Shown: in pieces, positions 1-63,688 of the stretch
Layout of the letters: every line of letters starts with the position of its first letter
Numbering within the stretch: position 1 is the stretch's first letter
Virus record (IMG/VR): IMGVR_UViG_3300047558_000137
Location: 310,315 to 374,314 of that record
Length of the DNA: 64,000 nucleotides
Direction: 5' to 3' (one strand)
Notes under the pieces: model-generated
Told to the model about the DNA's origin: nothing
Database searches by the model: none
What the model saw: only the letters and a program-made list of their open reading frames with translations
Program-made: the position numbers and the translations under genes

Positions 1-808
1 AATGTCCCATAATCAATGGAGAAAAAGTCTTCTCGGTCACCGATATGGTATTGCCATACTCAATTGATTCTCCGTATATAGAAACAAATGTATTCCTATA
101 GTATTCTCTATGTGGTGGTGCGTATACAATTGGTCTGTGACGACTTATACCACGCTCTAATTCTGCAACATCTCTGCACATAGGTCTTTCTGACTGCGGA
201 AATAGTGCTCTTGGAGGGTTGCTGTCAACGCTTCCTATATAGCCACGATCATTAAACGATTGCAAAAGATCAACTAACATAGTCCTGTATTTTCTAGGAC
301 GATCTGTATTACGATATGTTGTGTTAGTTGAAACAAAAATTTTGTTTTTCTGCATTGCATCAGGATGATCAACTGATTCATAATCACTTGGATGACTATA
401 GTGCAATACATGTGAACTATCACTATATTTGTAATGTTCATAATATGATTTGGTCATATTATATAGATAATCCAAGTAGATGATCTTAGGATGTTCTACA
501 TTTGGATCATAGGCACTAGTAAATGTTAAATCATGCACTGACCCAGGAATTCTATCTAGAATACGCTGTGCTTGATCTTCTTCTACGTGTAGATCAAACA
601 TGATCATTGAGCGATAACTATAAGTCTTATACAGATCTGCGTCAATACAGTCTGATTTATAAAAATTATTTGCAATCAATATGTCAACAGCACCACTATA
701 ATCTGTATTTTTACGATACTGATAGTTGGTATTGTTTAGATCAAAGAACCAACCATATTGATTCTTACGTGTGACTTTGTTGAAGTCTGGGTCTAGTATT
801 GTTAGCAT
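1..808 (-). CDS. Hypothetical glycosyltransferase-like protein (TEKT...PL..GH family), 3' end outside window
   Basis: Not in ORF track. Manual translation from ATG at 808 (MLTILDPDFNK...) appears open to the window edge and ends ...VSIYGESIEYGNTISVTEKTFSPLIMGH, the same motif as ORFs 3942-5051 and 51323-52309. Confidence 0.7.
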   Translation of the reverse strand, partial: MLTILDPDFNKVTRKNQYGWFFDLNNTNYQYRKNTDYSGAVDILIANNFYKSDCIDADLYKTYSYRSMIMFDLHVEEDQAQRILDRIPGSVHDLTFTSAYDPNVEHPKIIYLDYLYNMTKSYYEHYKYSDSSHVLHYSHPSDYESVDHPDAMQKNKIFVSTNTTYRNTDRPRKYRTMLVDLLQSFNDRGYIGSVDSNPPRALFPQSERPMCRDVAELERGISRHRPIVYAPPHREYYRNTFVSIYGESIEYGNTISVTEKTFSPLIMGH

Positions 809-822
809 GTATATATTATATA

Positions 823-899
823 TGGCGACCCCGAATGGATTTGAACCACTGACATTTGGTTTTGGAGACCAACGTTCTGCCGGACTGAACTACGGAGCC
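823..899 (-). tRNA. tRNA-Trp(CCA)
   Basis: GGCTCCG/CGGGGTC acceptor, anticodon arm TTGGT-CT CCA AA-ACCAA, TTCAAAT T-loop, encoded CCA. Confidence 0.95.
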
Positions 900-907
900 A
901 TATTAAA

Positions 908-1121
908 TTTGTAAGTAGTGCTACCATCATTATAAGCACCATTCACCCTTTACGTAAAGCCTAGGCTGGGACTCGGTACGTTACTTGGGATTCATCCAGC
1001 CTGTGCGCCACTATGCACCCGAGTCTTCCGACCCGTTGGGAATCGAACCCACGACCTTTTACTGTTTAGGTAGTTCGAACATACCATTAACAGCGTGACT
1101 TCACTTGCTAACACTTACAAA
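908..1121 (-). ncRNA. Unidentified ~215-nt multibranch structured RNA in tRNA array
   Basis: Terminal 9-bp inverted repeat TTTGTAAGT/ACTTACAAA; internal hairpins TGGG-TTCGATT-CCCA, CGGGTC-GGAA-GACTCG, AGGCTGG/CCAGCCT; fills the gap between two tRNAs. Confidence 0.65.
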
Positions 1122-1124
1122 ACT

Positions 1125-1216
1125 TGGCGGAAGGCGGAGGAGTCGAACCCCATCCCCGTTAGGAGAACCTGGTTTTCAAGGCCAGTCGCAGGACCAACCC
1201 CGCTGCATCACCTTCC
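1125..1216 (-). tRNA. tRNA-Ser(UGA) with 8/4 acceptor/T-stem fold
   Basis: Acceptor GGAAGGTG/CGCCTTCC (8 bp), T-stem GGGG/CCTC (4 bp), anticodon loop CT TGA AA, long variable arm TCTCC/GGGGA, G73, CCA. Confidence 0.9.
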
Positions 1217-1225
1217 ATAATAGAT

Positions 1226-1374
1226 TTTCTGAGTGACCAGCTATCTTTCTCAAGGACTCACTGGCTTGTCTCGTAGAGGAGAGTTTAAACTACCCGATGT
1301 TGCTACTGGTGTGTCAGTCTCAAGAATAGGGACCTAGCGCACCGGGGACTCAATCCAAACGTCTAACTCAGAAA
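1226..1374 (-). ncRNA. Unidentified ~150-nt structured RNA in tRNA array
   Basis: Terminal inverted repeat TTTCTGAGT/ACTCAGAAA nearly spanning the gap between flanking tRNA-type genes; internal hairpins. Confidence 0.55.
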
Positions 1375-1376
1375 CT

Positions 1377-1449
1377 TGGTGGATCAATGCGGGTTCGAAC
1401 CGCTACTGAGACCCATAATGGCAATCCCAGTTACTCCTAGACTTGACCC
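1377..1449 (-). ncRNA. tRNA-like RNA lacking a D-stem, with Ala identity elements (tmRNA tRNA-like-domain mimic)
   Basis: GGGTCAA/TTGATCC acceptor with G3.U70, A73, CCA; GCGG-TTCGAAC-CCGC T-arm; unpaired D-loop GTCTAGGAGTA; long ACTGGGAT/GTCTCAGT stem in place of an anticodon arm. Confidence 0.7.
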
Positions 1450-1455
1450 ATAACT

Positions 1456-1530
1456 TGGTGGAAGTAGCTAGATTCGAACTAGCGATAGTTACCGTATGAA
1501 GGTAGTGCATTACCACTTTGCTATACTTCC
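1456..1530 (-). tRNA. tRNA with CAU anticodon (Met or Ile2)
   Basis: GGAAGTA/TACTTCC acceptor, anticodon loop TT CAT AC, GCTAG-TTCGAAT-CTAGC T-arm, CCA. Confidence 0.9.
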
Positions 1531-1531
1531 A

Positions 1532-1625
1532 GTATTCTAAAACACATTAGTTGCCTAGCTTTGTCCCGGCAGTCGTTACCCGTCAAAAGGATAAAGAGCG
1601 TTTCATCTAATATGCTTTAGAATAC
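1532..1625 (-). ncRNA. Unidentified ~94-nt RNA closed by a 19-bp stem
   Basis: GTATTCTAAAGCATATTAG pairs fully with CTAATGTGTTTTAGAATAC on the minus strand using two G.U pairs (A.C mismatches on plus). Confidence 0.6.
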
Positions 1626-1637
1626 CCTGCATTTCTG

Positions 1638-1768
1638 CAGGATATGATAGGGTTGATACCCTACCCAGTTATTTGTACTCTGCCGTTATCGCCAGCATTT
1701 CATCCAACTGTCCGCCCGTTTGTGGCATGTTTTAAGTGCGCCACCCAGTCCTCGTTACTGGTATCCTT
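1638..1768 (-). ncRNA. Unidentified ~130-nt multibranch RNA
   Basis: Closing AGGATA/TATCCT stem with hairpins CCAGT/ACTGG, GTGGC/GCCAC, TAGGGT/ACCCTA. Confidence 0.5.
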
Positions 1769-1777
1769 CACACTACT

Positions 1778-1942
1778 CTACGGTTGTAAAGTACGTTCTT
1801 CCTGAACTTTTCTGGAACGATAGTGCCTTTCGGCCCGTTCCATCTTATCTTGGATCAACTTGTGTAGCTGTTCCTTAGTAAGAGTATGTTCAGTTGTGAA
1901 CTTTACTTCTCGCATACGTTGTTTCAAATTCACTTGTTTCAT
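1778..1942 (-). CDS. Small basic hypothetical protein (54 aa), first gene after the attenuator-like terminator
   Basis: ATG at 1942 (MKQVNLKQRMRE...) preceded by AGGA; the ORF-track start at 1960 lies in the terminator U-tract. Confidence 0.5.
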   Translation of the reverse strand: MKQVNLKQRMREVKFTTEHTLTKEQLHKLIQDKMERAERHYRSRKVQEERTLQP

Positions 1943-1958
1943 TTTCTTTCCTACAAAC

Positions 1959-1991
1959 AAAAAACCCTAGGGTTTTTAGTCCTAGGGTTCC
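1959..1991 (-). terminator. Intrinsic terminator, putative attenuator
   Basis: AACCCTAGG-ACTAAAAAC-CCTAGGGTT followed by TTTTG on minus strand; its 5' arm GGAACCCT is also complementary to AGGGTTCC in the upstream leader ORF. Confidence 0.8.
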
Positions 1992-2019
1992 TTTTAGTTT
2001 AGAATGTAAGTTTGTTTAC

Positions 2020-2163
2020 TTAACCATCCCATCCCTCTCGGAACCCTGTTGTAATCTCTGGTGTGCGATCACTATTTGTATTCGCAAACAAAGACCAATA
2101 GGCTGACATGCCTAGTCCGGGCTGTTGTTGTTTAAGCGAATGACAGAATGTGTGTTGCATCAT
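2020..2163 (-). CDS. Putative attenuator leader peptide (47 aa)
   Basis: MMQHTFCHSLKQQQPGLGMSAYWSLFANTNSDRTPEITTGFREGWDG*; ATG 7 nt after a consensus -10 box; ends about 30 nt before the terminator. Confidence 0.65.
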   Translation of the reverse strand: MMQHTFCHSLKQQQPGLGMSAYWSLFANTNSDRTPEITTGFREGWDG

Positions 2164-2170
2164 GTTTCCT

Positions 2171-2199
2171 ATTGTATTTTATTTATCTCTTTGTGTCAA
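2171..2199 (-). promoter_or_regulatory. sigma70-type promoter with late-type ATAAATA in the spacer
   Basis: TTGACA-17 nt (caaagagataaataaaa)-TACAAT. Confidence 0.8.
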
Positions 2200-2233
2200 C
2201 CACTATATCAAATAGTGGTAAAATTGTTCATTT

Positions 2234-2324
2234 TGGTAGGAGAGACCGGAGTCGAACCGATATCAGCCAATTATCTGTTGCTACGGGGTATAAGCCCGCC
2301 GTTTTACCATTAAACTACTCTCCC
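2234..2324 (-). tRNA. tRNA-Ile(UAU) with long variable region
   Basis: GGGAGAG/CTCTCCT acceptor, GCGGG-CT TAT AC-CCCGT anticodon arm, ~21-nt variable region, TTCGACT T-loop, CCA. Confidence 0.85.
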
Positions 2325-2332
2325 AGAAAATT

Positions 2333-2418
2333 TGGTGCGACTGGCCGGAATCGAACCGGCACGCCATTACAGCGGGAGATTTTAAGTCTCCTGTGGCTAC
2401 CAATTACACCACAGTCGC
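2333..2418 (-). tRNA. tRNA-Leu(UAA)
   Basis: GCGACTG/CAGTCGC acceptor, GGAGA-CT TAA AA-TCTCC, long variable arm, CCA. Confidence 0.95.
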
Positions 2419-2426
2419 ATCTACGA

Positions 2427-2477
2427 TCATAACAATCGTATTCGTAACTGGAATGTGTCTAAGGTAAGTTGTTTCAT
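2427..2477 (-). CDS. Putative 16-aa leader peptide rich in UUA/UUG/AUA codons
   Basis: ATG AAA CAA CTT ACC TTA GAC ACA TTC CAG TTA CGA ATA CGA TTG TTA TGA (MKQLTLDTFQLRIRLL*); ATG follows the -10 box by 6 nt; stop is 8 nt before tRNA-Leu(UAA). Confidence 0.55.
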   Translation of the reverse strand: MKQLTLDTFQLRIRLL

Positions 2478-2483
2478 GATCTA

Positions 2484-2512
2484 ATTGTAATTTATTTATC
2501 TTTTACTGTCAA
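2484..2512 (-). promoter_or_regulatory. sigma70-type promoter with late-type ATAAATA in the spacer
   Basis: TTGACA-17 nt (gtaaaagataaataaat)-TACAAT. Confidence 0.8.
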
Positions 2513-3369
2513 ATGACTTTTGCATCTGTACAGCTCTTGCATAAACTGCCGCTATTGTAGCAAGGTTCTGCATTCAGTGCAAGCAATTTGGTAAATTCAG
2601 GACCTGTAAACAAATCTTCATACTTTTGTGTTAAAAGATTGCCCAGCACATGCTTGGTATCGTAGTCCATACAGCATAATACTACATCTCCATTAGGCAA
2701 CAAAACGTTTTGGTCATATAGACTTGTTTTACCGCAAACTACGGGCTTTTTGTGTTCTATAGTAAACACAACAGGTTGCTCTTTGATCTGCTCTTTGTTT
2801 AATGTACCTGCACGATCATGGGCCGCAATACTCCAATCATGACTGACGTATACCCCGGGTAAATGGCGAATTGCTGGATGCACTCCATGATCACTCATGG
2901 CCATTGCTTCGTAATGTATACCTGCTGCCTGTACAATTTCACGCATACCAATGTAGGCGTATTCCCATTCTTCACTGAGCTTCCAACCCTTCATGTTACC
3001 TGCTTCGTCAGGAAAGTGTATCTTGAATATGTCAACTTGGCCTGCATGATTTAGTAACAGTTCGCCTACTCTATGTACTGTAGTTTCGTCCCAGTTGTAT
3101 AGTGTAGTAAAGATGGCAACTTGCCTATCATTTTCTAGGGCATACTCTAGCATGTCTGTACAGGCCGGATTAACCCAGGGTTCTGCCATGCCAGAAAAGT
3201 CAATACGACAATCCCATGGTAGTCGATCTACTACTGTTTTAAATGTATCCAAGCTCATATACTTGGCATCTTCTTTACCATATGCATCACGTAGGTTGTC
3301 TTGTGGACAAAACGTACACATTAGGGGACAACCAATCATGGTTGTTATTTCCATTGTTTTGTGGCTCAT
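2509..3369 (-). CDS. Radical SAM protein with SPASM/twitch domain
   Basis: CPLMCTFC (CxxxCxxC) and C-terminal C...GDVVLCC...CKSC. Confidence 0.9.
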   Translation of the reverse strand: MSHKTMEITTMIGCPLMCTFCPQDNLRDAYGKEDAKYMSLDTFKTVVDRLPWDCRIDFSGMAEPWVNPACTDMLEYALENDRQVAIFTTLYNWDETTVHRVGELLLNHAGQVDIFKIHFPDEAGNMKGWKLSEEWEYAYIGMREIVQAAGIHYEAMAMSDHGVHPAIRHLPGVYVSHDWSIAAHDRAGTLNKEQIKEQPVVFTIEHKKPVVCGKTSLYDQNVLLPNGDVVLCCMDYDTKHVLGNLLTQKYEDLFTGPEFTKLLALNAEPCYNSGSLCKSCTDAKVI

Positions 3370-3608
3370 GACTTATTTAACTGTGCCCAAGCGAGCCAGG
3401 ATCTAAAACTTTCATAGACCGCTTGCGCTTCTTTATCATCTTGATCGATTCGTACTCCACGCACATAGAAACCATTATGGCTCACACGTAGCATTTCTTC
3501 TGAACCTGAATGAAAAATAATGCTATTTTTTGCCGCTTCAATTGCATCTACATCGATACTAAACAACTTTTTTGGGGGTTGTTCGTAGTTAAACTGAGAG
3601 GTGGTCAT
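3366..3608 (-). CDS. Hypothetical protein
   Basis: ORF tightly packed with neighbours. Confidence 0.7.
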   Translation of the reverse strand: MTTSQFNYEQPPKKLFSIDVDAIEAAKNSIIFHSGSEEMLRVSHNGFYVRGVRIDQDDKEAQAVYESFRSWLAWAQLNKS

Positions 3609-3945
3609 GCTTAATTTCCCTTACTGGATCGCCCAATGCTTCGGCTAGGTTGTTCTTAATTGTAACACGTATGTTATTATAATTACGAATTTCAACTGCT
3701 CTGCGCCCAATCTCCTCGTAGCCTAGGTTGTCTTCTAGTCCGCGACGTAGATCGCTTTCCAATGCCCAAATGCTTAGATGCACAACTTCTAGTCGCTCAA
3801 GCAATGGCTGTACAGGTTCTAGATCAAATCTTTTGGCCTGTTCAGCATAGTAATCGTATTCAGCTTGGTTACCTAGACCTTTATCTAGTTTAATCTTGGC
3901 AATTACTAATCGATCTAATAGTTCTACTACTGGGAAAAATATCAT
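3589..3945 (-). CDS. Hypothetical helical protein (ELLDRL...IW.LE..LR family)
   Basis: ORF with 4-nt overlap to upstream gene. Confidence 0.75.
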   Translation of the reverse strand: MIFFPVVELLDRLVIAKIKLDKGLGNQAEYDYYAEQAKRFDLEPVQPLLERLEVVHLSIWALESDLRRGLEDNLGYEEIGRRAVEIRNYNNIRVTIKNNLAEALGDPVREIKHDHLSV

Positions 3946-5051
3946 ACGTACTTCTTAAATTGTTCTAATGTTAAGTCAGGAAGATTAATGTAATCTGTGT
4001 CTGCATATTGTGGCAGTGCATCAATTAAGATTTTATACAAATCAAAATAGACTTCTTCTGCTAAACGATACATAATCATTCTGTTATGCTGACGAATTTC
4101 TTGTGTTGGCTCAACAAGTTTTACATCAGATTTAACTAAGCGTTCAACTTCTGCGGCCACTGCACGTAGGCGCTCTCCTGGATACTCTAGACTATCGTAA
4201 GACTCATCTATTAGATCGCCAAACGTTTTAAACCCAAAGGCATGTAAGTGTCTAAGTGTATATTGCCCGCCTACTACAAGAAATGGATGCCCAACTAATA
4301 ACGGCTTGTATGTTTTCTCTGTTACAAAGGTTTCGTTAGGTGCTGTTTCCAATGCTAGACTAAATTCTGTGTGCCAGTAATGCGGCGGATAGAAGTTTTC
4401 AAATCTAAAATCTTCATGGAAGTTTGCATTGGGCCAATCAATGATTGGCTTAACATCTAGTTCAGTACGATCGGGAATTCTGTAATCAATGAAGCTGTGG
4501 ATGCTTTGATTTAAGATATCTCGTTCAATCAGTTCCTTAAACATTTCTTCTCTATTGTGTCGGCGTGTGCCATTTAAGAAAAGATATTTAAAAGTCTTTG
4601 GAAATGTGCTGATACCATCTGCGGTATATGCAAGTCTAGCACGATTAAACTCTGTAGTTAGTCTATAGACAAAATACTTGTCTAGATTGTGTTCAACGAA
4701 ACCATCAACTGCCCTATTGCCTTGCTTAACCAAGTGAATAGGTATGCGTCTACGCACATAGTCCCTAGTGGGGTAATAACTACTGCTTAGTGTACTTTCA
4801 CACTCACTTGGATAGTAGAAAATAATTGGAATGCCCAGGCTAGCACAACGATCAATAATTTGCTTGGCATAGTCGCCATCGTTGCCCGGGACTTCTTCAA
4901 CAAAGGCATCTGTTATTACAGCATCGCCTGTAATATCTTCTGGATTTTTTACAATGGTGTAGGGTATGTTATACAGTTCCAGTACTGTAGTTAATAATCG
5001 ATTTCTTGCACTACTAGGCCCAAGGGTCTGTCGAATTAAAAAATTTATCAT
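3942..5051 (-). CDS. Glycosyltransferase-like protein (TEKTYKPL..GHPF family)
   Basis: Start corrected to MINFLIRQ (5051), because the longer ORF overlaps tRNA-Leu; ETAPNETFVTEKTYKPLLVGHPF resembles the GT10-like motif. Confidence 0.65.
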   Translation of the reverse strand: MINFLIRQTLGPSSARNRLLTTVLELYNIPYTIVKNPEDITGDAVITDAFVEEVPGNDGDYAKQIIDRCASLGIPIIFYYPSECESTLSSSYYPTRDYVRRRIPIHLVKQGNRAVDGFVEHNLDKYFVYRLTTEFNRARLAYTADGISTFPKTFKYLFLNGTRRHNREEMFKELIERDILNQSIHSFIDYRIPDRTELDVKPIIDWPNANFHEDFRFENFYPPHYWHTEFSLALETAPNETFVTEKTYKPLLVGHPFLVVGGQYTLRHLHAFGFKTFGDLIDESYDSLEYPGERLRAVAAEVERLVKSDVKLVEPTQEIRQHNRMIMYRLAEEVYFDLYKILIDALPQYADTDYINLPDLTLEQFKKYV

Positions 5052-5057
5052 GTTATA

Positions 5058-5134
5058 TGGTGCGGATGGTGGGACTCGAACCCACAAAATTTGGCTTCTA
5101 AGACCAACACGTATACCAATTCCATCACATCCGC
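5058..5134 (-). tRNA. tRNA-Leu(UAG), short variable loop
   Basis: GCGGATG/CATCCGC acceptor, TTGGT-CT TAG AA-GCCAA, 5-nt variable loop, CCA. Confidence 0.92.
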
Positions 5135-5145
5135 GTATGTGATCT

Positions 5146-5174
5146 AGTATAGTGTATATATCTTTATTTGTCAA
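5146..5174 (-). promoter_or_regulatory. sigma70-type promoter for tRNA-Leu(UAG)
   Basis: TTGACA-17-TATACT. Confidence 0.8.
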
Positions 5175-6768
5175 GCGGGTATAGCATTTTATAAAAATCT
5201 TTTGATGCAATACCTGTTAAACTTTGTTCTCTATACTTTTCACCCAGTTGATTAAAATACTCGATTGCCAGTGATTCAGTGTCCGAATCTAATTCTGTTA
5301 ATAATCCCTCTGTCGGTATATCATAGTATGTAGCCTGCGATACCCAAACACTCCTAGACCATAGATACTTTTTATTTCTAGCATCAACAACATTTCTTCT
5401 ACTTGTATTATTAATTAAATCATACAACATTTGAATCGAGTTTTGCTGCCTACCAACTTCTCTCATGTTTTCCCAATAAGGAGTATCCTTTTTGCAAAGA
5501 TGAAAGGCAAAACGAATACGTAGTAGTGTATCTGCCATACGCATATTAACATACTCGTTGAAGTCTTCTTTCCATGTGCAGTCTAAATTTGTATCTGTTT
5601 TTAGATTGTCTACAACAAATTCAATTTTGCCTAGTGCAGTTGAAAAAGCATTAGCATCATACGCATCTACTAATCCATGACTTAGCCCTATTGTTATACA
5701 ATTATTAACAAATGCTTTTTCTTGGTATCCAGGCTCCCATGAAATTAATCTAAAGTCTACATCTGTTTTACCAGTTTTTTGGTAATACTCATCCTTTAGT
5801 GATTCAACATTGGTTGTATGGCGAGAATTGAATACATATCCCTCGCCACTACGAACATCCATTGCTACACTAAAATGCCAACCTTGATCCATTGCACGAA
5901 TGTATGCATTGCTAGTTCGTTCGTTATCGTCGGTATATTTGTGTGGCCCAACAATGCATCTATCATTGAATGAATCATCTAGATGCTTAAACTTGTAGGG
6001 TAATTTTTTGCACAAAACTCTAGCGAAGCCAGTGCAGTCAAAATATAGATCTGCTGTTGCATGTGAGTCATCGTCTAATAGTAGATAATCAATATCGCCA
6101 TTTTCTTTTAACACAACATCCTTAATTGCAATAGGTAACTCTTTAACACCGGCTGGCTTGCCTACCATATTATGAACCACTGCCCCAATTCGCATAGCAT
6201 TAATATGATATCCAAATGTGCCACGTGGATGATTCCATTGCCCGGTTGTTATATTATAAGGTATTCTATCGTTACGCGAATACCAATAAGATTGGCTTGA
6301 ATGTCCTGTATATAAATCCTTAGGAGTTCTATACTCTAATTGATTTAGTAGGCCTTTATTTTTTAAGTACAACCATACATCGAGCATATCATATGGTGTT
6401 TGCGATTTATAAAAAGATGAATACTTTACTGCATCTATTCCACTCTCTTTAAAATCATTAAGTATTCCCATGTTAGGAACATCAGCATGATTTGTGTAGA
6501 AAACTGAATTGCTGTTATCCCAGTCCTGAAACCGAGACCCTACTCGAAATATCGATCCCGATTCTTTAATCCATTTAATATCTTTTTCAAACCCTAGCAC
6601 CTTGTTCATAAAAGATGATGAGTTCCATTGTAGTGCTTCTCCTACTCCCACCACTGGAGTTTTTGGATCGTATATAAGTGTTACGTCTAGATCTGGTCTA
6701 TTACGCTTAATAGCAGATGATACAAAATTGCCGGCTGCGCCAGCGCCAACAACAATTATTTTTTTCAT
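5164..6768 (-). CDS. Tryptophan-halogenase-family flavoprotein (divergent)
   Basis: Start corrected to MKKIIVVGAGAAG (6768); VGVGEA and ADLYFDCTGF motifs. Confidence 0.85.
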   Translation of the reverse strand: MKKIIVVGAGAAGNFVSSAIKRNRPDLDVTLIYDPKTPVVGVGEALQWNSSSFMNKVLGFEKDIKWIKESGSIFRVGSRFQDWDNSNSVFYTNHADVPNMGILNDFKESGIDAVKYSSFYKSQTPYDMLDVWLYLKNKGLLNQLEYRTPKDLYTGHSSQSYWYSRNDRIPYNITTGQWNHPRGTFGYHINAMRIGAVVHNMVGKPAGVKELPIAIKDVVLKENGDIDYLLLDDDSHATADLYFDCTGFARVLCKKLPYKFKHLDDSFNDRCIVGPHKYTDDNERTSNAYIRAMDQGWHFSVAMDVRSGEGYVFNSRHTTNVESLKDEYYQKTGKTDVDFRLISWEPGYQEKAFVNNCITIGLSHGLVDAYDANAFSTALGKIEFVVDNLKTDTNLDCTWKEDFNEYVNMRMADTLLRIRFAFHLCKKDTPYWENMREVGRQQNSIQMLYDLINNTSRRNVVDARNKKYLWSRSVWVSQATYYDIPTEGLLTELDSDTESLAIEYFNQLGEKYREQSLTGIASKDFYKMLYPLDK

Positions 6769-6901: not shown

Positions 6902-7654
6902 TTACCGACGCTCGATATCCTCTTCAATACAATCTGTGCCGTACTGTATTTCTACAATTTTGCAAGGTGTATTAAACGGGTTAACTAAACGATGCCATCC
7001 GCCACGTGGGATGTGTATACTCATATGTTCGCTTAGTTCCTGTACTGGCATGAAATATCCATTATCCATTTGCTGTTCGACAATGCATTGTCCTTCGCTA
7101 ACGTGCCAGTATTCAGAACGTTTCCAGTGTCGTTGCATACTTAAACTCTGCCCGGGATTTACTGTTAACTCTTTTACTTTAGTACCAGCAACTTCGTGTA
7201 GTACACGATAGTACCCCCATGCACGTTCAGTCTTAGGCGCTTTCCATTCTTCTAGGATCCAACTGCTACTGTTAGCTTTATTCTCTCCGCCAACACCAAA
7301 TTTAAAGACTACATCTTTCTCAGTCATTTCTGGAATATTATCTATTGTTCGGTCACCGCCGTTAGCAAAGATAATTTCATCGTTTGGATATAATTGTTTG
7401 ACTAAACGAATAGCATTAGTAGAGCTACCATCATCGTCATTATATGCAATTACATCATCCACCATTGATAAATTTTCAATAATAACAGAACGCTCAAACC
7501 ATGGCATAAAAGCTCGCCCCTTTTTGCGCTCAAGCCAGTCATCGCTGTTAACTCCGACTACAAGACGATCGCCTAACTCTCTGGCGGCTTTAAAATAGGC
7601 AATATGCCCGCTGTGGATAGGATCAAATCCGCCTGTTACTAATACTATTTTCAT
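6902..7654 (-). CDS. Cytidylyltransferase-like domain fused to cupin (mannose-6-phosphate isomerase type II C-terminal-like)
   Basis: GGFDPIHSGH (HxGH) N-terminal domain; RAWGYY...LSMQRH..RSEYW...EIQYG...EEDIER cupin. Confidence 0.9.
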   Translation of the reverse strand: MKIVLVTGGFDPIHSGHIAYFKAARELGDRLVVGVNSDDWLERKKGRAFMPWFERSVIIENLSMVDDVIAYNDDDGSSTNAIRLVKQLYPNDEIIFANGGDRTIDNIPEMTEKDVVFKFGVGGENKANSSSWILEEWKAPKTERAWGYYRVLHEVAGTKVKELTVNPGQSLSMQRHWKRSEYWHVSEGQCIVEQQMDNGYFMPVQELSEHMSIHIPRGGWHRLVNPFNTPCKIVEIQYGTDCIEEDIERR

Positions 7655-29873: not shown

Positions 29874-30079
29874 TCATATGTGTTACCGTCGGGCAACACG
29901 CCTTCTTTAATACTGTCCACGCCTTGTTTGCCCACTAGGTTAGGGTTCTCTGTTGCAATAACAACAAAGGTGCCGCCGGCATCACGGGCGTCTTTGGCCA
30001 CGTTCAATGCTTCGCCTAGTTCTGTTCGGAACAAACTGTGTTCGCGACCAATTTTGTCTGTCCAGTATATTTTATGCAT
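29852..30079 (-). CDS. Hypothetical protein
   Basis: Coupled ORF ending YDWKKRRI. Confidence 0.7.
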   Translation of the reverse strand: MHKIYWTDKIGREHSLFRTELGEALNVAKDARDAGGTFVVIATENPNLVGKQGVDSIKEGVLPDGNTYDWKKRRI

Positions 30080-30530
30080 TTTCTAATATTTTGTAAAATA
30101 ATTGTTCGAATTTTACAGTGAGCAGTTTTTCTCGGCTCCATGCCTCACGTTCCCATGGGCGGTCCCAATACTCTGCGTTGACCTGTTTGCCTAACCAAAA
30201 ATGTGTGTCACCGTCATACTCGTCAACAAAGAACCAGTAGTGCCCTTTGACCATTTGCTTAACATGAATCATTTCATGTGCTAGTACTTGAATCAATGAG
30301 TCAAACTTCAATGAGCTGTCTACAAATATCACAATCTGCTTACGGCCCTTAACAGGATCGTCCATTTGGCACATGCCCCGGGCACCTTGATCTTTAATCA
30401 AACCCTTGACAGAGTATACATAAAGATCAAATTTGTTGTTTAACAACTTGAGTTCTTCTGCATAGAATGGCACAGCCATGTCAATGATCTGAAACAAACG
30501 ATTAGTTTTTGCGCGGATGTGTAAGTTCAT
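30072..30530 (-). CDS. Zincin-like metallopeptidase domain protein
   Basis: LAHEMIHVKQ (HExxH) and PWEREA; extended -10 TGcTATAAT 6 nt before ATG. Confidence 0.8.
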   Translation of the reverse strand: MNLHIRAKTNRLFQIIDMAVPFYAEELKLLNNKFDLYVYSVKGLIKDQGARGMCQMDDPVKGRKQIVIFVDSSLKFDSLIQVLAHEMIHVKQMVKGHYWFFVDEYDGDTHFWLGKQVNAEYWDRPWEREAWSREKLLTVKFEQLFYKILENA

Positions 30531-30555: not shown

Positions 30556-30822
30556 TTAGCTGTATGTTAGCACAGCAATTAAACTATATTGCTGGAAATG
30601 TTTAATACTTTCGTTAAACTTTTCCTCAATTTCCCGGTATTTTGTTGTAAAAACGCCACGGCGCCTGCAGGCAATCATTTCTGTGTCTAGCTCTGCCCAG
30701 TACTTTCGTACTACATTGTAGAACTTCCACATTGCACTTTTAGCACGTATATCAGATATTGACTGTAGTGCTGTTAAACACTCGTCCAATTTAAGGTGAT
30801 TTTGGTGGTGGTGCGCTTGCAT
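30556..30822 (-). CDS. Hypothetical protein
   Basis: ATG 6 nt after sigma70 -10 box. Confidence 0.7.
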   Translation of the reverse strand: MQAHHHQNHLKLDECLTALQSISDIRAKSAMWKFYNVVRKYWAELDTEMIACRRRGVFTTKYREIEEKFNESIKHFQQYSLIAVLTYS

Positions 30823-62879: not shown

Positions 62880-63253
62880 TTACAAGAGCGAAGCGATGTA
62901 GTATTCATCTAGATTAAGTGGTCACACTTTGCCCGCACAGGGCAAAAAATGACTTCATCTGAGTTGCACAGTCACTTAGCGTTACATCAATTACAGAGGC
63001 GGTTGTCCGGTACCTCGAGATGCGTCTTATCACAACGGCGGGCTAATATCTATACGCTAACATACATATTAACCGTGCTCAATCACTTGAGCGTCTTTTT
63101 AGCTTTTATTACTCTATTCAAATAACCAAACCGTAGCATTTACGATCGACGTCCTGTTAAGGATGGTGGTTAAGCACTCTAGTCAGCATAGAGATTTCCG
63201 TCCCCCTTTTTATCGGGTTGTCACTAGGCACCTGAACTTAGCCGGTGCGAGCC
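62880..63253 (-). ncRNA. Long structured non-coding element downstream of GIY-YIG gene
   Basis: Dense hairpins: GCACC/GGTGC, CTCTA/TAGAG, TCCT-TAAC-AGGA, GCTCAA-GTGA-TTGAGC, GGTTAATAT/ATATTAGCC, TTTGCCC/GGGCAAA; no ORF in the track. Confidence 0.6.
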
Positions 63254-63688
63254 TTAAACTGATAACTTGTTTATAATGTGGGAGCCATGGACACGGACTG
63301 ATATTTGTCCGTTATAGTAATCTGTTGATTCCAAAACTTTGTGTGTAAATTGTTCTCGAGCCTCAACGTAGCTACATTCTGCTTTACTTTTACATAGGTA
63401 TAGTATTTCCCGTGTAAATTTGTCAGCACCTAATGCTTCTACATCTTTGTTTAATTGATCATTTGAGCCATAATATTCGCGCCAATCAGAGTCCACTTTG
63501 CTGCGGATTTTCTTTTTCTTTTTGGTGCCGTTTTTTAATTTTACTGTTTTGGTAGATGTTTTACTAAATTTTGCTAGTTTTTTGCCTATGTATTTGCGCC
63601 CTGATACAAGGTTTGTGATTAGATAGACAAAGCCCACACAGTCTTCTGGTAATTCATTGATTGTGTTGCCTTGATAAATCCATGTCAT
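63254..63688 (-). CDS. GIY-YIG family nuclease (single domain)
   Basis: GFVYLITN..SGRKYIGKK, YYGS, REIL, YVEAREQ, YYN. Confidence 0.85.
   Translation of the reverse strand: MTWIYQGNTINELPEDCVGFVYLITNLVSGRKYIGKKLAKFSKTSTKTVKLKNGTKKKKKIRSKVDSDWREYYGSNDQLNKDVEALGADKFTREILYLCKSKAECSYVEAREQFTHKVLESTDYYNGQISVRVHGSHIINKLSV

Follow-up and report, generated by a model that had tools for sequence, protein, structure and literature searches.

A codon-constrained, AUA-rich mini-ORF upstream of phage tRNA genes

In a 374-kb freshwater phage, a strong promoter is positioned directly in front of a 16-codon mini-ORF that ends 8 nt before two tRNA genes, and relatives of this mini-ORF, which almost always spell isoleucine as AUA, are found upstream of the same unusual AUA-reading tRNA in at least 10 other phage lineages. 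The ORF is therefore real and codon-constrained, and may allow the phage to gauge its own tRNA supply. We examined a 64,000-nt stretch (hereafter the window; positions 310,315 to 374,314 of IMG/VR record IMGVR_UViG_3300047558_000137), in which an initial annotation had pointed to a leaderless uORF whose codons match the two tRNAs behind it. What that annotation described is indeed present in the sequence, on the minus strand, with the following elements:

2507..2512 (-), the -35 hexamer TTGACA, which overlaps the TGA stop (2511-2509) of the upstream radical-SAM/SPASM gene (2509-3369).
2484..2489 (-), the -10 hexamer TACAAT, 17 nt after the -35; this promoter (P1) is of the GATAAATAA-spacer subtype, otherwise found only in front of a 47-aa small-gene family.
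2478..2483 (-), a 6-nt spacer, TAGATC, between the -10 and the ATG; the start of transcription is predicted, from geometry, at or next to A2477 (leaderless).
2427..2477 (-), the mini-ORF, from ATG 2477-2475 through 16 sense codons (MKQLTLDTFQLRIRLL) to TGA 2429-2427.
2430..2447 (-), the tail codons UUA-CGA-AUA-CGA-UUG-UUA, the presumed sensing codons; the core CGA-AUA-CGA is shared with the family, and two further cognate UUA-type positions lie upstream, including 2460-2462.
2422..2440 (-), a weak 7-bp hairpin that starts in the AUA codon and spans the stop codon.
2419..2426 (-), an 8-nt gap between the stop codon and tRNA position +1, holding the RNase P leader positions.
2333..2418 (-), tRNA-Leu(UAA), with CCA encoded, followed by another 8-nt gap.
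2234..2324 (-), tRNA(UAU), 91 nt, with a 7/5 cloverleaf and a 21-nt variable arm whose loop, CAGAUAA, is invariant; CCA is encoded.
2200..2218 (-), a perfect 7-bp inverted repeat (CCACTAT/ATAGTGG) between tRNA(UAU) and the next promoter, not followed by a T-run.
1959..2199 (-), a paralogous unit comprising promoter P2 (2199-2171), a leaderless-type 47-aa gene (2163-2020) and an intrinsic terminator (1989-1963), which is the first terminator downstream of the tRNA pair.

Both tRNAs were called by ARAGORN and supported by the Rfam tRNA model (55.6 and 62.3 bits), and a search of Rfam with 780-2560 at E <= 1 returned only tRNA-type hits. The promoter is one of only four near-consensus TTGACA-N17-TAnAAT sites in 64 kb (0.83 expected; 0 of 100 shuffles reach four). 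No Shine-Dalgarno sequence lies upstream of the ORF, and no terminator-like site was found between 2477 and 2234, as the initial annotation had stated. The hairpin overlapping the stop, also noted there, exists but is no better than expected (-5.6 kcal/mol, z = -0.02; 90 of 200 shuffles fold as well), and RNAalifold applied to 9 family members predicted only the tRNA helices, so that the hairpin could be rejected as a regulatory element. The absence of a conserved leader structure is as expected for a translated stretch. Classical ribosome-mediated attenuation with alternative terminator and antiterminator hairpins, suggested by a short ORF enriched in codons tied to the downstream genes, is thus contradicted by the sequence: there is no intrinsic terminator, no conserved leader structure, and only 8 nt between the stop and the tRNA. 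Pairing of the leader with the 5' half of tRNA(UAU) was seen in one MFE fold, but the z-score of the whole region was only -1.49.

The ORF contains 3 TTA, 1 TTG, 1 ATA, 1 CTT and 2 CGA codons. Contrary to the initial annotation, the codons matching the tRNAs are not rare in the phage: TTA is the commonest Leu codon in 35 window ORFs (26 per 1000), and ATA represents 20% of Ile codons. Taken alone, the enrichment is only a ~1% tail event, since five or more of 15 codons from {TTA, TTG, ATA} (5 of 15 in this ORF) occur in 0.7% of open 15-codon windows of this DNA and in 7 of 576 mini-ORFs, although this ORF ranks first among 85 mini-ORFs that end within 30 nt of a tRNA in the loci fetched for comparison. 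In addition, we could not detect a general excess of cognate codons upstream of tRNAs: none of 26 anticodon classes survived correction, and TTA upstream of tRNA-Leu(UAA) gave p = 0.94. On these grounds alone, the ORF could be taken for a product of chance, a reading that the initial annotation had left open.

Wider comparison argued against chance. ORFs of 10-16 codons, with the same register and a tail of the R-I-R-I-S-stop type, lie 5-15 nt upstream of the same long-variable-arm tRNA(UAU) in at least 10 other phage lineages. The members, designated by the number of the phage locus (L), and their gaps to tRNA(UAU) are:

L053, MSHLTFKRIRIS, 12 nt.
L179, MNQTAFNTIRIS, 7 nt.
L295, MKTFTIKRIRISY, 5 nt.
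L298 and L311, MNHFTFKRIHITH, 6 nt, differing by TAA/TGA and CAC/CAT.
L306, MTPNAFSLIRIS, 6 nt.
L308, MIHFTINYIRIS, 11 nt.
L139, MTHATIIRIRIS, 10 nt.
L235 and L242, MM(T/K)HFSIAGSISIR, 14 nt.
L282, L310, L268, L157 and L299, longer frames closed by the same R-I tail.

Across nine non-identical copies, frame 0 contains 0 stops in 114 codons, as compared with 21 in 210 in the other two frames (P about 1e-5 if independent; the copies share ancestry, so the P values overstate independence). ATA occurs 17 times in frame and never out of frame, and Ile is encoded 17 times by ATA against 3 times by ATT/ATC, versus 20% ATA in window genes. The distance from the ATG to the first tail ATA is exactly 24 nt in seven lineages, although codons 2-8 are almost saturated with changes, and start and stop are kept, with TAA/TGA swaps and synonymous CGT/CGA and CAC/CAT changes. 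The association with tRNA(UAU) was specific: CGAATA[CT][CG] lies within 50 nt upstream of 5 of 97 tRNA(UAU) contexts against 6 of 1464 other tRNAs (p = 3e-4), and ATAnnnATA in 6 of 97 against 32 of 1464 (p = 0.027), with five control motifs flat. However, only about 6-8% of tRNA(UAU) genes carry the ORF. U at -1 is invariant in the 9 members aligned.

The window ORF shares with L053, L282 and others the ATG context, the ACC/ACT and TT(T/A) codons and the CGA-ATA-CGA core, and fits the family, as we define it here, in length (10-16 codons), in its tail (CGA-ATA-CGA-TTG-TTA-TGA, for a family tail of CGN-ATA-(CGN/CAY)-...) and in its 8-nt gap to a tRNA (5-15 nt in the family). It departs from it in two respects. 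First, in the window, L137 and L181, tRNA-Leu(UAA) stands between the ORF and tRNA(UAU), while in five relatives (L139, L298, L311, L179 and L306) the order is tRNA-Leu(UAA), ORF, tRNA(UAU); L139, for example, has no ORF before tRNA-Leu but has a family member between tRNA-Leu and an uncalled tRNA(UAU). Second, the window ORF has one ATA rather than two in its last five codons, UUG-UUA, cognate to the tRNA-Leu now adjacent, standing where relatives have AUA-UCC. This is consistent with the earlier prediction that uORF codons co-vary with the downstream anticodons, but it represents a single event, and the UUA link is seen only in this lineage.

The leaderless geometry also recurs. L235/L242 independently carry TTGACA-17-TATACT-6-ATG, with differing spacers; three long window ORFs have TATAAT-6-ATG; and in the 47-aa family the spacing from the -10 to the ATG is 6-7 nt in 9 of 13 members. 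Most mini-ORF family members, however, have neither a promoter nor a Shine-Dalgarno sequence in front of the ATG, while about half of the window's genes do have one. Among three haplotypes of the locus, all 4 changes between the -35 and the tRNA fall in the 6-nt spacer (TAGATC, TCAATC, TAGACC), the only fast-changing stretch, and in the 8-nt spacer, and none falls in the promoter or the ORF. The identity of the ORF in the close relatives L137 and L181 (51/51) is nevertheless uninformative, because the whole 660-nt block 2610-1951 is 97-98% identical, including synonymous sites at the 3' end of the radical-SAM gene. A variant in another metagenome changes codon 7 from D to N. RNA-library (Logan) contigs nearly identical to the phage cover 1729-2057 and 2126-2345 but not 2420-3000; such metatranscriptome contigs, which cannot show transcript ends, were too sparse to reveal 5' ends or leader coverage.

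A megablast of window positions 1-6000 against cultured phages found nothing, as did a search of cultured phages with the L298 ORF plus tRNA, and no phage with the ORF is present in the 50,697 phage records searched. A back-translated peptide pattern hit only the window's own contig in IMG/VR, and BLAST of the leader against the comparison loci collected up to that stage hit only that contig and L137.

The promoter and first codons of the mini-ORF are copies of the 5' end of the neighbouring 47-aa unit, the rest of the gene being absent. P1 matches small-gene promoters at 23-26 of 29 positions, against 15-20 of 29 for the tRNA promoters that follow the radical-SAM gene in relatives, and this promoter subtype is followed by the small gene in 10 of 12 distinct occurrences, the other two being P1. 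A family profile built without the window hits P1 plus the first 13 nt of the ORF at E = 0.012, and pairwise alignment of the leader to the 5' ends of the L002/L077 genes gave z = 4.3-4.4, with 0 of 500 shuffles as good and with gaps that are not multiples of three. These observations raise the possibility that the ORF is an inert relic, a decaying stub that travels with the tRNA(UAU) cassette, and that the promoter simply drives a dicistronic tRNA precursor whose 59-nt leader is removed by RNase P. Such a reading is in line with the non-significant hairpin, the negative general cognate-codon test, and the finding that in relatives the promoter lies 8-12 nt from a tRNA, as do two other tRNA promoters in the window. 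A relic should, however, accumulate stops, frameshifts and ATT/ATC codons, whereas the frame, the 24-nt register and the ATA codons are kept, the tail is conserved while codons 2-8 are nearly randomised, and a second lineage keeps a consensus promoter exactly 6 nt before its ATG. We therefore consider the relic unlikely, although it is the strongest of the alternatives. An origin of the leader as a decayed tRNA-Met, which follows the same promoter position in relatives, received no support from alignment. The mini-ORFs or the 47-aa protein are also not supported as RiPP precursors for the adjacent radical-SAM/SPASM enzyme, because in relatives that gene is followed by tRNAs or sugar-modification genes and the pairing is not kept.

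Three further readings appeared still less likely. The conserved AUACGNAUA(UCC) stretch could act as an RNA-level binding or cleavage signal in the pre-tRNA leader, for a nuclease, a modification enzyme or a phage protein, with the open frame as a by-product; this would fit the motif's association with tRNA(UAU), its persistence in a G+C-rich context in L157, the invariance of ATAC in 9 aligned leaders and the lack of obvious translation start signals in most members. It does not explain the conserved ATG 24 nt upstream, the absence of stops in only one frame, the conserved stop position with TAA/TGA swaps, or the promoters that place the ATG at the predicted transcript start; moreover, the motif's distance to the tRNA varies by more than 20 nt and no conserved pairing was found. 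The product might alternatively be a short cationic micro-peptide (...FKRIRIS) acting in trans, as the conserved R-I-R-I-S tail with synonymous Arg and His changes could suggest. This is improbable, since the near-exclusive use of ATA would remain unexplained, the N-terminal two thirds are not conserved, the window version ends in RIRLL, strict adjacency to one tRNA gene is not expected for a trans-acting peptide, and no Pfam or PHROG family was found for the related small protein. Finally, abundant translation of a short, highly promoted ORF with AUA close to the stop (in L268 and L299 it is the last sense codon) might sequester AUA-reading tRNA as peptidyl-tRNA, as with lambda bar-like minigenes, and so reshape host translation; minigene and hungry-codon effects are documented (PMC2490762). 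This is very doubtful, because drop-off is strongest for ORFs of at most 6-8 codons (PMC2490762) whereas these have 10-16, the phage's own tRNA(UAU) would also be depleted, and the cis adjacency to the tRNA gene is not explained.

Our preferred explanation, held tentatively, is that the mini-ORF is a selected element that acts in cis as a gauge of AUA decoding, and in this window of UUA/UUG decoding too. In this model, a consensus sigma-70-type promoter starts a transcript at, or within a base of, the A of the ATG, the first 51 nt of which form the mini-ORF, which arose from a duplicated 5' end (promoter plus first codons) of the neighbouring small gene. The family, whose members end in ...AUA-CGN-AUA-UCC-stop, would most likely be translated as a leaderless message here and in L235/L242, and elsewhere from an A/U-rich site 11-19 nt after the preceding tRNA. 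While the tRNA encoded just behind is scarce, ribosomes would dwell 2-4 codons before the stop; when it is plentiful, they would run on to the stop, where their footprint would reach the RNase P leader and the 5' end of the tRNA. Ribosome position would then change how well the precursor is matured or how long it survives, although the distance from the AUA codons to tRNA +1 varies from 15 to 37 nt, so that no single steric geometry fits all members. We favour negative feedback that caps a tRNA whose U34 could misread AUG. The sequence comparisons establish the architecture, the family, the open frame, the ATA bias and the recurrence of the leaderless geometry, whereas the transcription start, translation, any effect on tRNA synthesis or maturation, and the target and sign of control are inferred. 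The interpretation in the initial annotation is supported in part: the ORF is not a chance frame, but rare codons, a significant hairpin and a general cognate-codon rule are not supported, and the feedback mechanism is inferred.

Several systems resemble this arrangement in part. Leader peptides of amino-acid operon attenuators (trpL, hisL, leuL, ilvL, pheL/pheM; for pheL, PMC3082878) are 10-30-codon ORFs ahead of the regulated genes, with regulatory codons conserved at the codon level and clustered near the end, over which ribosome speed reports the supply of the matching charged tRNA; here, there is no terminator/antiterminator pair, the downstream genes are the tRNAs themselves, the stop codon lies 5-15 nt from the tRNA 5' end, and the message is predicted to be leaderless in two lineages. 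Leaderless polycysteine short ORFs proposed as Cys-responsive attenuators in mycobacteria (bioRxiv 10.1101/834739) likewise begin with AUG and are proposed to sense tRNA charging through codon content and to control downstream genes in cis, but occur in different hosts and target amino-acid metabolism rather than tRNAs. In tnaC-type control, as in our model, there is no intrinsic terminator and what matters is where the ribosome sits next to the stop codon and what it covers just downstream; tnaC, however, senses free tryptophan through the nascent peptide and acts on Rho, whereas here the presumed signal is codon decoding and the covered site would be the RNase P leader or the tRNA 5' end. 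The effect of lambda bar minigenes and hungry codons (PMC2490762) depends on rare A-rich codons such as AUA near the stop and on the pool of one minor tRNA, but these very short phage ORFs act in trans by sequestering peptidyl-tRNA and are 2-8 codons long, whereas the present family is physically tied to the gene of the tRNA that reads its codons. Dimeric tRNA precursors of phage T4 and promoter-proximal phage tRNA genes share a host-type promoter, two tRNAs a few bases apart on one precursor and 5' maturation by RNase P (presumed here), and other tRNAs in this window and in relatives lie 8-12 nt from a consensus -10; those have no conserved ORF in the leader.

The tRNA(UAU) is itself unusual, as Ile tRNAs normally lack a long variable arm. 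UAU anticodons combined with such an arm are found in nematode nev-tRNA(UAU) (PMC3333845, PMC4300185) and bacterial allo-tRNAs (PMC5389517), but nev-tRNAs are charged with Leu in vitro and allo-tRNAs have 8/4 or 9/3 structures, while the phage tRNA keeps a 7/5 acceptor/T structure and a 4-bp D stem, and the 7-nt loop of its variable arm resembles a GAU anticodon loop. Discriminator A73 and U12:A23 are present, but 29:41 is G:C; GenBank phage records annotate relatives as tRNA-Ile (tat), and an isoleucine identity is inferred from sequence alone.

Leader peptides that sense tRNA supply are textbook regulators of amino-acid operons, but to our knowledge have not been described for tRNA genes themselves, and full-text literature searches on this question and on the unusual tRNA found neither such a case nor a description of this mini-ORF. 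It remains possible, though less likely than not, that this is a self-gauging tRNA gene, in which the very first codons of the tRNA transcript form a translated mini-ORF built around codons that only the downstream tRNAs read well (AUA everywhere, plus UUG/UUA in this lineage). Ribosome transit over them would set how much mature tRNA is made, and the tail codons would be re-tuned when a different tRNA becomes the neighbour. This would be the first leader-peptide control of tRNA genes, working without a terminator and probably by ribosome occupancy next to the RNase P site. If the family works as proposed, it would show that phages regulate the dose of a risky tRNA, since a UAU anticodon can in principle misread AUG, and it would give a compact, portable, codon-specific sensor of about 50 nt. 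Small ORFs inside phage tRNA clusters, usually ignored in annotation, would become meaningful. Even on the cautious reading, the analysis defines a conserved, codon-constrained mini-ORF family, a small-protein family of predicted leaderless type, and a widespread phage tRNA(UAU) with an anticodon-like extra arm.

The window belongs to a 374-kb contig from a freshwater metagenome (IMGVR_UViG_3300047558_000137) that encodes a tail sheath-type protein and many genes without known families. Its first 7 kb, read on the minus strand, form a tRNA region interleaved with sugar-modification-type genes, including a Trp-halogenase-like gene, a cytidylyltransferase/cupin gene, a methyltransferase and a radical-SAM/SPASM gene. 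This region also holds tRNA-like genes that neither ARAGORN nor the Rfam tRNA model calls (1129-1216, 1377-1449 and about 1028-1110, minus strand): the stretch at 1129-1216 scores 37.9 bits on the tRNA-Sec model (below threshold), has a UGA anticodon and a long variable arm, and may be an 8/4-type tRNA-Ser like those reported in phages (PMC5389517), whereas the stretch at 1377-1449 ends in ...CCACCA and has a good acceptor stem but an odd core. Toward the other end of the window, positions 63120-63253 (minus strand), just upstream of a 144-aa ORF (63254-63688), gave a full-length match to the Rfam Polynucleobacter-1 RNA motif (79.8 bits against a gathering score of 37).

The arrangement described in the initial annotation was confirmed in the sequence, with the following order on the minus strand:

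3369-2509 (minus): radical-SAM gene, ending in a TGA that lies inside the TTGACA of the next promoter
2512-2507 (minus): TTGACA (-35)
2489-2484 (minus): TACAAT (-10), seventeen bases further on; this promoter is referred to as P1
2477 (minus): ATG, separated from the -10 by TAGATC, beginning the mini-ORF MKQLTLDTFQLRIRLL
2429-2427 (minus): stop codon of the mini-ORF
2418-2333 (minus): tRNA-Leu(UAA), beginning eight bases after the stop codon
2324-2234 (minus): tRNA(UAU) of 91 nt, beginning after eight more bases
2199-2171 (minus): a second promoter of the same form
2163-2020 (minus): 47-codon ORF, followed by a strong intrinsic terminator

Only four near-consensus promoters of this form exist in the 64 kb, as compared with 0.83 expected. 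Apart from P1 and the promoter at 2199-2171, the remaining two sit 11 nt in front of tRNA-Met (6853) and tRNA-Leu(UAG) (5134). The hairpin noted in the initial annotation as overlapping the stop codon is real but ordinary (-5.6 kcal/mol, z = -0.02), and no terminator was found before the tRNAs.

The tRNA(UAU) itself belongs to a widespread phage family of 91-95 nt, which we found in the window, in the related phage loci L038, L039, L042, L048, L051-L053, L057, L065, L137, L146 and L159, and in about 100 further IMG/VR contexts. Its acceptor and T stems covary freely, while the D arm, the anticodon arm and a 21-nt variable arm are almost invariant; the variable-arm stem shows compensatory changes, and its 7-nt loop, CAGAUAA, contains GAUAA, the anticodon-loop bases of a GAU Ile tRNA. 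This tRNA is nearly absent from 185,579 species genomes (2 hits), but is present in cultured Vibrio phages (Thalassavirus), where it is annotated simply as tRNA-Ile (tat). One idea is that the extra arm is an identity or decoy element.

Taken alone, the codon content of the mini-ORF would be compatible with chance or with a relic. TTA is the most used Leu codon in 35 window ORFs and ATA accounts for 20% of Ile codons, so that the codons are not rare in the phage, contrary to the initial annotation. Five cognate codons in 15 is a ~1% event: it occurs in 0.7% of open 15-codon windows and in 7 of 576 mini-ORFs, and this ORF is the top case among 85 mini-ORFs ending next to a tRNA in the loci examined. 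In relatives carrying the same radical-SAM gene (62-73% identity), a promoter overlaps the stop codon of that gene and a tRNA follows after 8-12 nt.

In two very close relatives, L137 and L181, the ORF is 51/51 identical. However, this says little, because the entire 660-nt block at 2610-1951, running from the 3' end of the radical-SAM gene through P1, the mini-ORF, both tRNAs and the small gene to the terminator, is 97-98% identical between these phages while the flanks are 60-85% identical, and looks like a recently exchanged module. Nevertheless, all four changes between the -35 and the tRNA among the three haplotypes fall in the two short spacers. Outside this block, a G+C-richer, structured-looking stretch of 240 nt (1531-1770, minus strand) lies just upstream of tRNA-Met (1530-1456); sixty bases of it (1621-1680) are 100% identical in L137, although the surroundings differ and L137 has an insertion, and no Rfam hit was obtained for it at E <= 1.

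The region at 1959-2199 (minus strand), called an attenuator in the initial annotation, is a self-contained unit consisting of a consensus promoter, a 47-aa ORF starting 7 nt after the -10, and an intrinsic terminator. This ORF (2163-2020) is a real, conserved small-protein gene, with homologues in at least 13 phage contigs that keep the frame through indels of whole codons and share AYWS, DR(T/S)xEI and EGWD(G/D)-stop motifs; no Pfam or PHROG family matches it, and sources call it hypothetical. In 9 of 13 members the ATG lies 6-7 nt after the -10, a conserved layout of the leaderless type as judged from this spacing. P1 belongs to the promoter subtype of this family, being identical at 23-26 of 29 positions, as compared with 15-20 of 29 for the tRNA promoters that follow the radical-SAM gene in relatives. 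Among all loci compared, this subtype is followed by the small gene in 10 of 12 distinct cases, and the other two are P1. In addition, a family profile built without the window hits P1 and the first 13 nt of the mini-ORF (E = 0.012), and the leader aligns to the 5' ends of some members with z about 4.3. The unit therefore began as a duplicated 5' end of the small gene.

Examination of all mini-ORFs next to tRNAs revealed a homologous leader in L053, a contig syntenic with window positions 11144-7663 and 2327-1829, in which the leader lies between tRNA-Arg and tRNA(UAU) and reads MSHLTFKRIRIS before the stop. The phage locus L179 has MNQTAFNTIRIS followed by a stop, between tRNA-Leu(UAA) and tRNA(UAU). 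A pattern scan for CGAATA upstream of the D-arm of the tRNA then brought in further phage loci, in each of which the sequence given ends at a stop codon: L295 (MKTFTIKRIRISY), L298 and L311 (MNHFTFKRIHITH, differing by CAC/CAT and TAA/TGA), L306 (MTPNAFSLIRIS) and L308 (MIHFTINYIRIS), as well as longer frames ending ...PRIRLR (L282), ...PRIRIR (L310) and ...TPRI (L268, the end of a normal gene), and MKENPAYFRI (L299). L235 and L242 have MM(T/K)HFSIAGSISIR and a stop, with three ATA codons, and L139 carries MTHATIIRIRIS and a stop between its tRNA-Leu(UAA) and a tRNA(UAU) that had not been called. In L302 (IMGVR_UViG_3300048592_000301, about position 6904 on the reverse strand), a tRNA with the same D arm but a CAU anticodon (possibly an AUA-reading Ile2-type tRNA) is preceded by a mini-ORF, MRIRIKFVMLF, that starts ATG-CGA-ATA-AGA-ATT and ends 4 nt before the tRNA.

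Several lines of evidence indicate that the frame is constrained as coding. In seven lineages the ATG is exactly 24 nt from the first tail ATA, although codons 2-8 differ at most positions. In nine non-identical copies, frame 0 has no stop in 114 codons, while frames 1 and 2 have 21 in 210 (expected 11.4; p about 1e-5 if independent, although the copies are related by descent). ATA occurs 17 times in frame 0 of these copies and never in the other frames, and Ile is encoded by ATA 17 times and by ATT/ATC 3 times; in L139 the two non-tail Ile codons are ATT and the two tail ones are ATA. Synonymous changes do occur elsewhere (CGT/CGA, CAC/CAT, ACC/ACT), and stops swap between TAA and TGA. No conserved structure was detected in the leader using RNAalifold, in which only the tRNA helices and an invariant U at -1 appear.

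The motif is specific to this tRNA: CGAATA[CT][CG] was found upstream of 5 of 97 tRNA(UAU) genes as compared with 6 of 1464 other tRNAs (p = 3e-4), and ATAnnnATA upstream of 6 of 97 as compared with 32 of 1464 (p = 0.027), with control motifs flat. Only about 6-8% of tRNA(UAU) genes have the ORF, however, and most copies have no recognisable start signal other than an A/U-rich stretch 11-19 nt after the preceding tRNA. L235 and L242 carry TTGACA-17-TATACT-6-ATG with different spacer sequences, an independent version of the leaderless geometry. The window also contains three ORFs of ordinary length (30072-30530, 30556-30822 and 2-808, minus strand; 152, 88 and more than 269 aa) that begin exactly 6 nt after a TATAAT and have no Shine-Dalgarno sequence, one of them with TTGGCA-17 upstream and one with an extended -10 (TGC), suggesting that the phage uses leaderless messages for some genes.

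In five relatives the order is promoter, tRNA-Leu(UAA), mini-ORF, tRNA(UAU), whereas in the window, L137 and L181 it is promoter, mini-ORF, tRNA-Leu(UAA), tRNA(UAU). Here the ORF has a four-codon in-frame insertion containing UUA, and its tail reads AUA-CGA-UUG-UUA where relatives read AUA-CGN-AUA-UCC. This is the co-variation between mini-ORF codons and downstream anticodons that had been set beforehand as a check, but it represents a single event. The general tests were negative: none of 26 anticodon classes shows enrichment after correction, and TTA is not enriched upstream of tRNA-Leu(UAA) elsewhere (4 of 37, p = 0.94).

Two freshwater metatranscriptome runs hold contigs nearly identical to window positions 2126-2345 and 1729-2057 (2 differences in 220 nt and in 329 nt), consistent with read-through from the tRNAs into the small gene. 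DNA carry-over cannot be excluded, and contigs cannot show ends; no contig covered 2420-3000.

Full-text literature searches for a mini-ORF upstream of phage tRNA genes, or for a phage tRNA(UAU) with such a variable arm, found no description of either, and a search for leader peptides in tRNA operons surfaced leaderless Cys-ORF attenuators in mycobacteria (10.1101/834739). This system is among the nearest analogues, together with attenuator leader peptides, tnaC-type occupancy control, and minigene and hungry-codon effects (PMC2490762); for the tRNA itself, the nearest are nev-tRNAs and allo-tRNAs (PMC3333845, PMC4300185, PMC5389517).

We conclude that the ORF is a genuine, conserved, codon-constrained element. 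The feedback loop proposed in the initial annotation, in which translation speed over cognate codons controls the tRNAs, is partly supported, being plausible but unproven. We favor the full sensor explanation only tentatively, and consider it unlikely, though possible, that the ORF is an inert relic. While the architecture, the conserved frame and the preference for ATA were established by sequence comparison, translation of the ORF, the sign of the effect and its target (RNase P, nucleases or Rho) are inferred.

In the model we favor, with the stop codon located 5-15 nt from tRNA +1, a terminating ribosome should cover the leader positions that RNase P uses and, in the short-gap members, the first bases of the tRNA as well, whereas a ribosome waiting at the tail AUA codons would sit 6-12 nt further back. 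The variable distance between AUA and the tRNA (15-37 nt) argues against any single rigid geometry. The mini-ORF would act in cis as an occupancy sensor, linking maturation or survival of the precursor to how fast AUA (here also UUA/UUG) is read, and its probable role would be that of a brake on a tRNA whose U34 could misread AUG.
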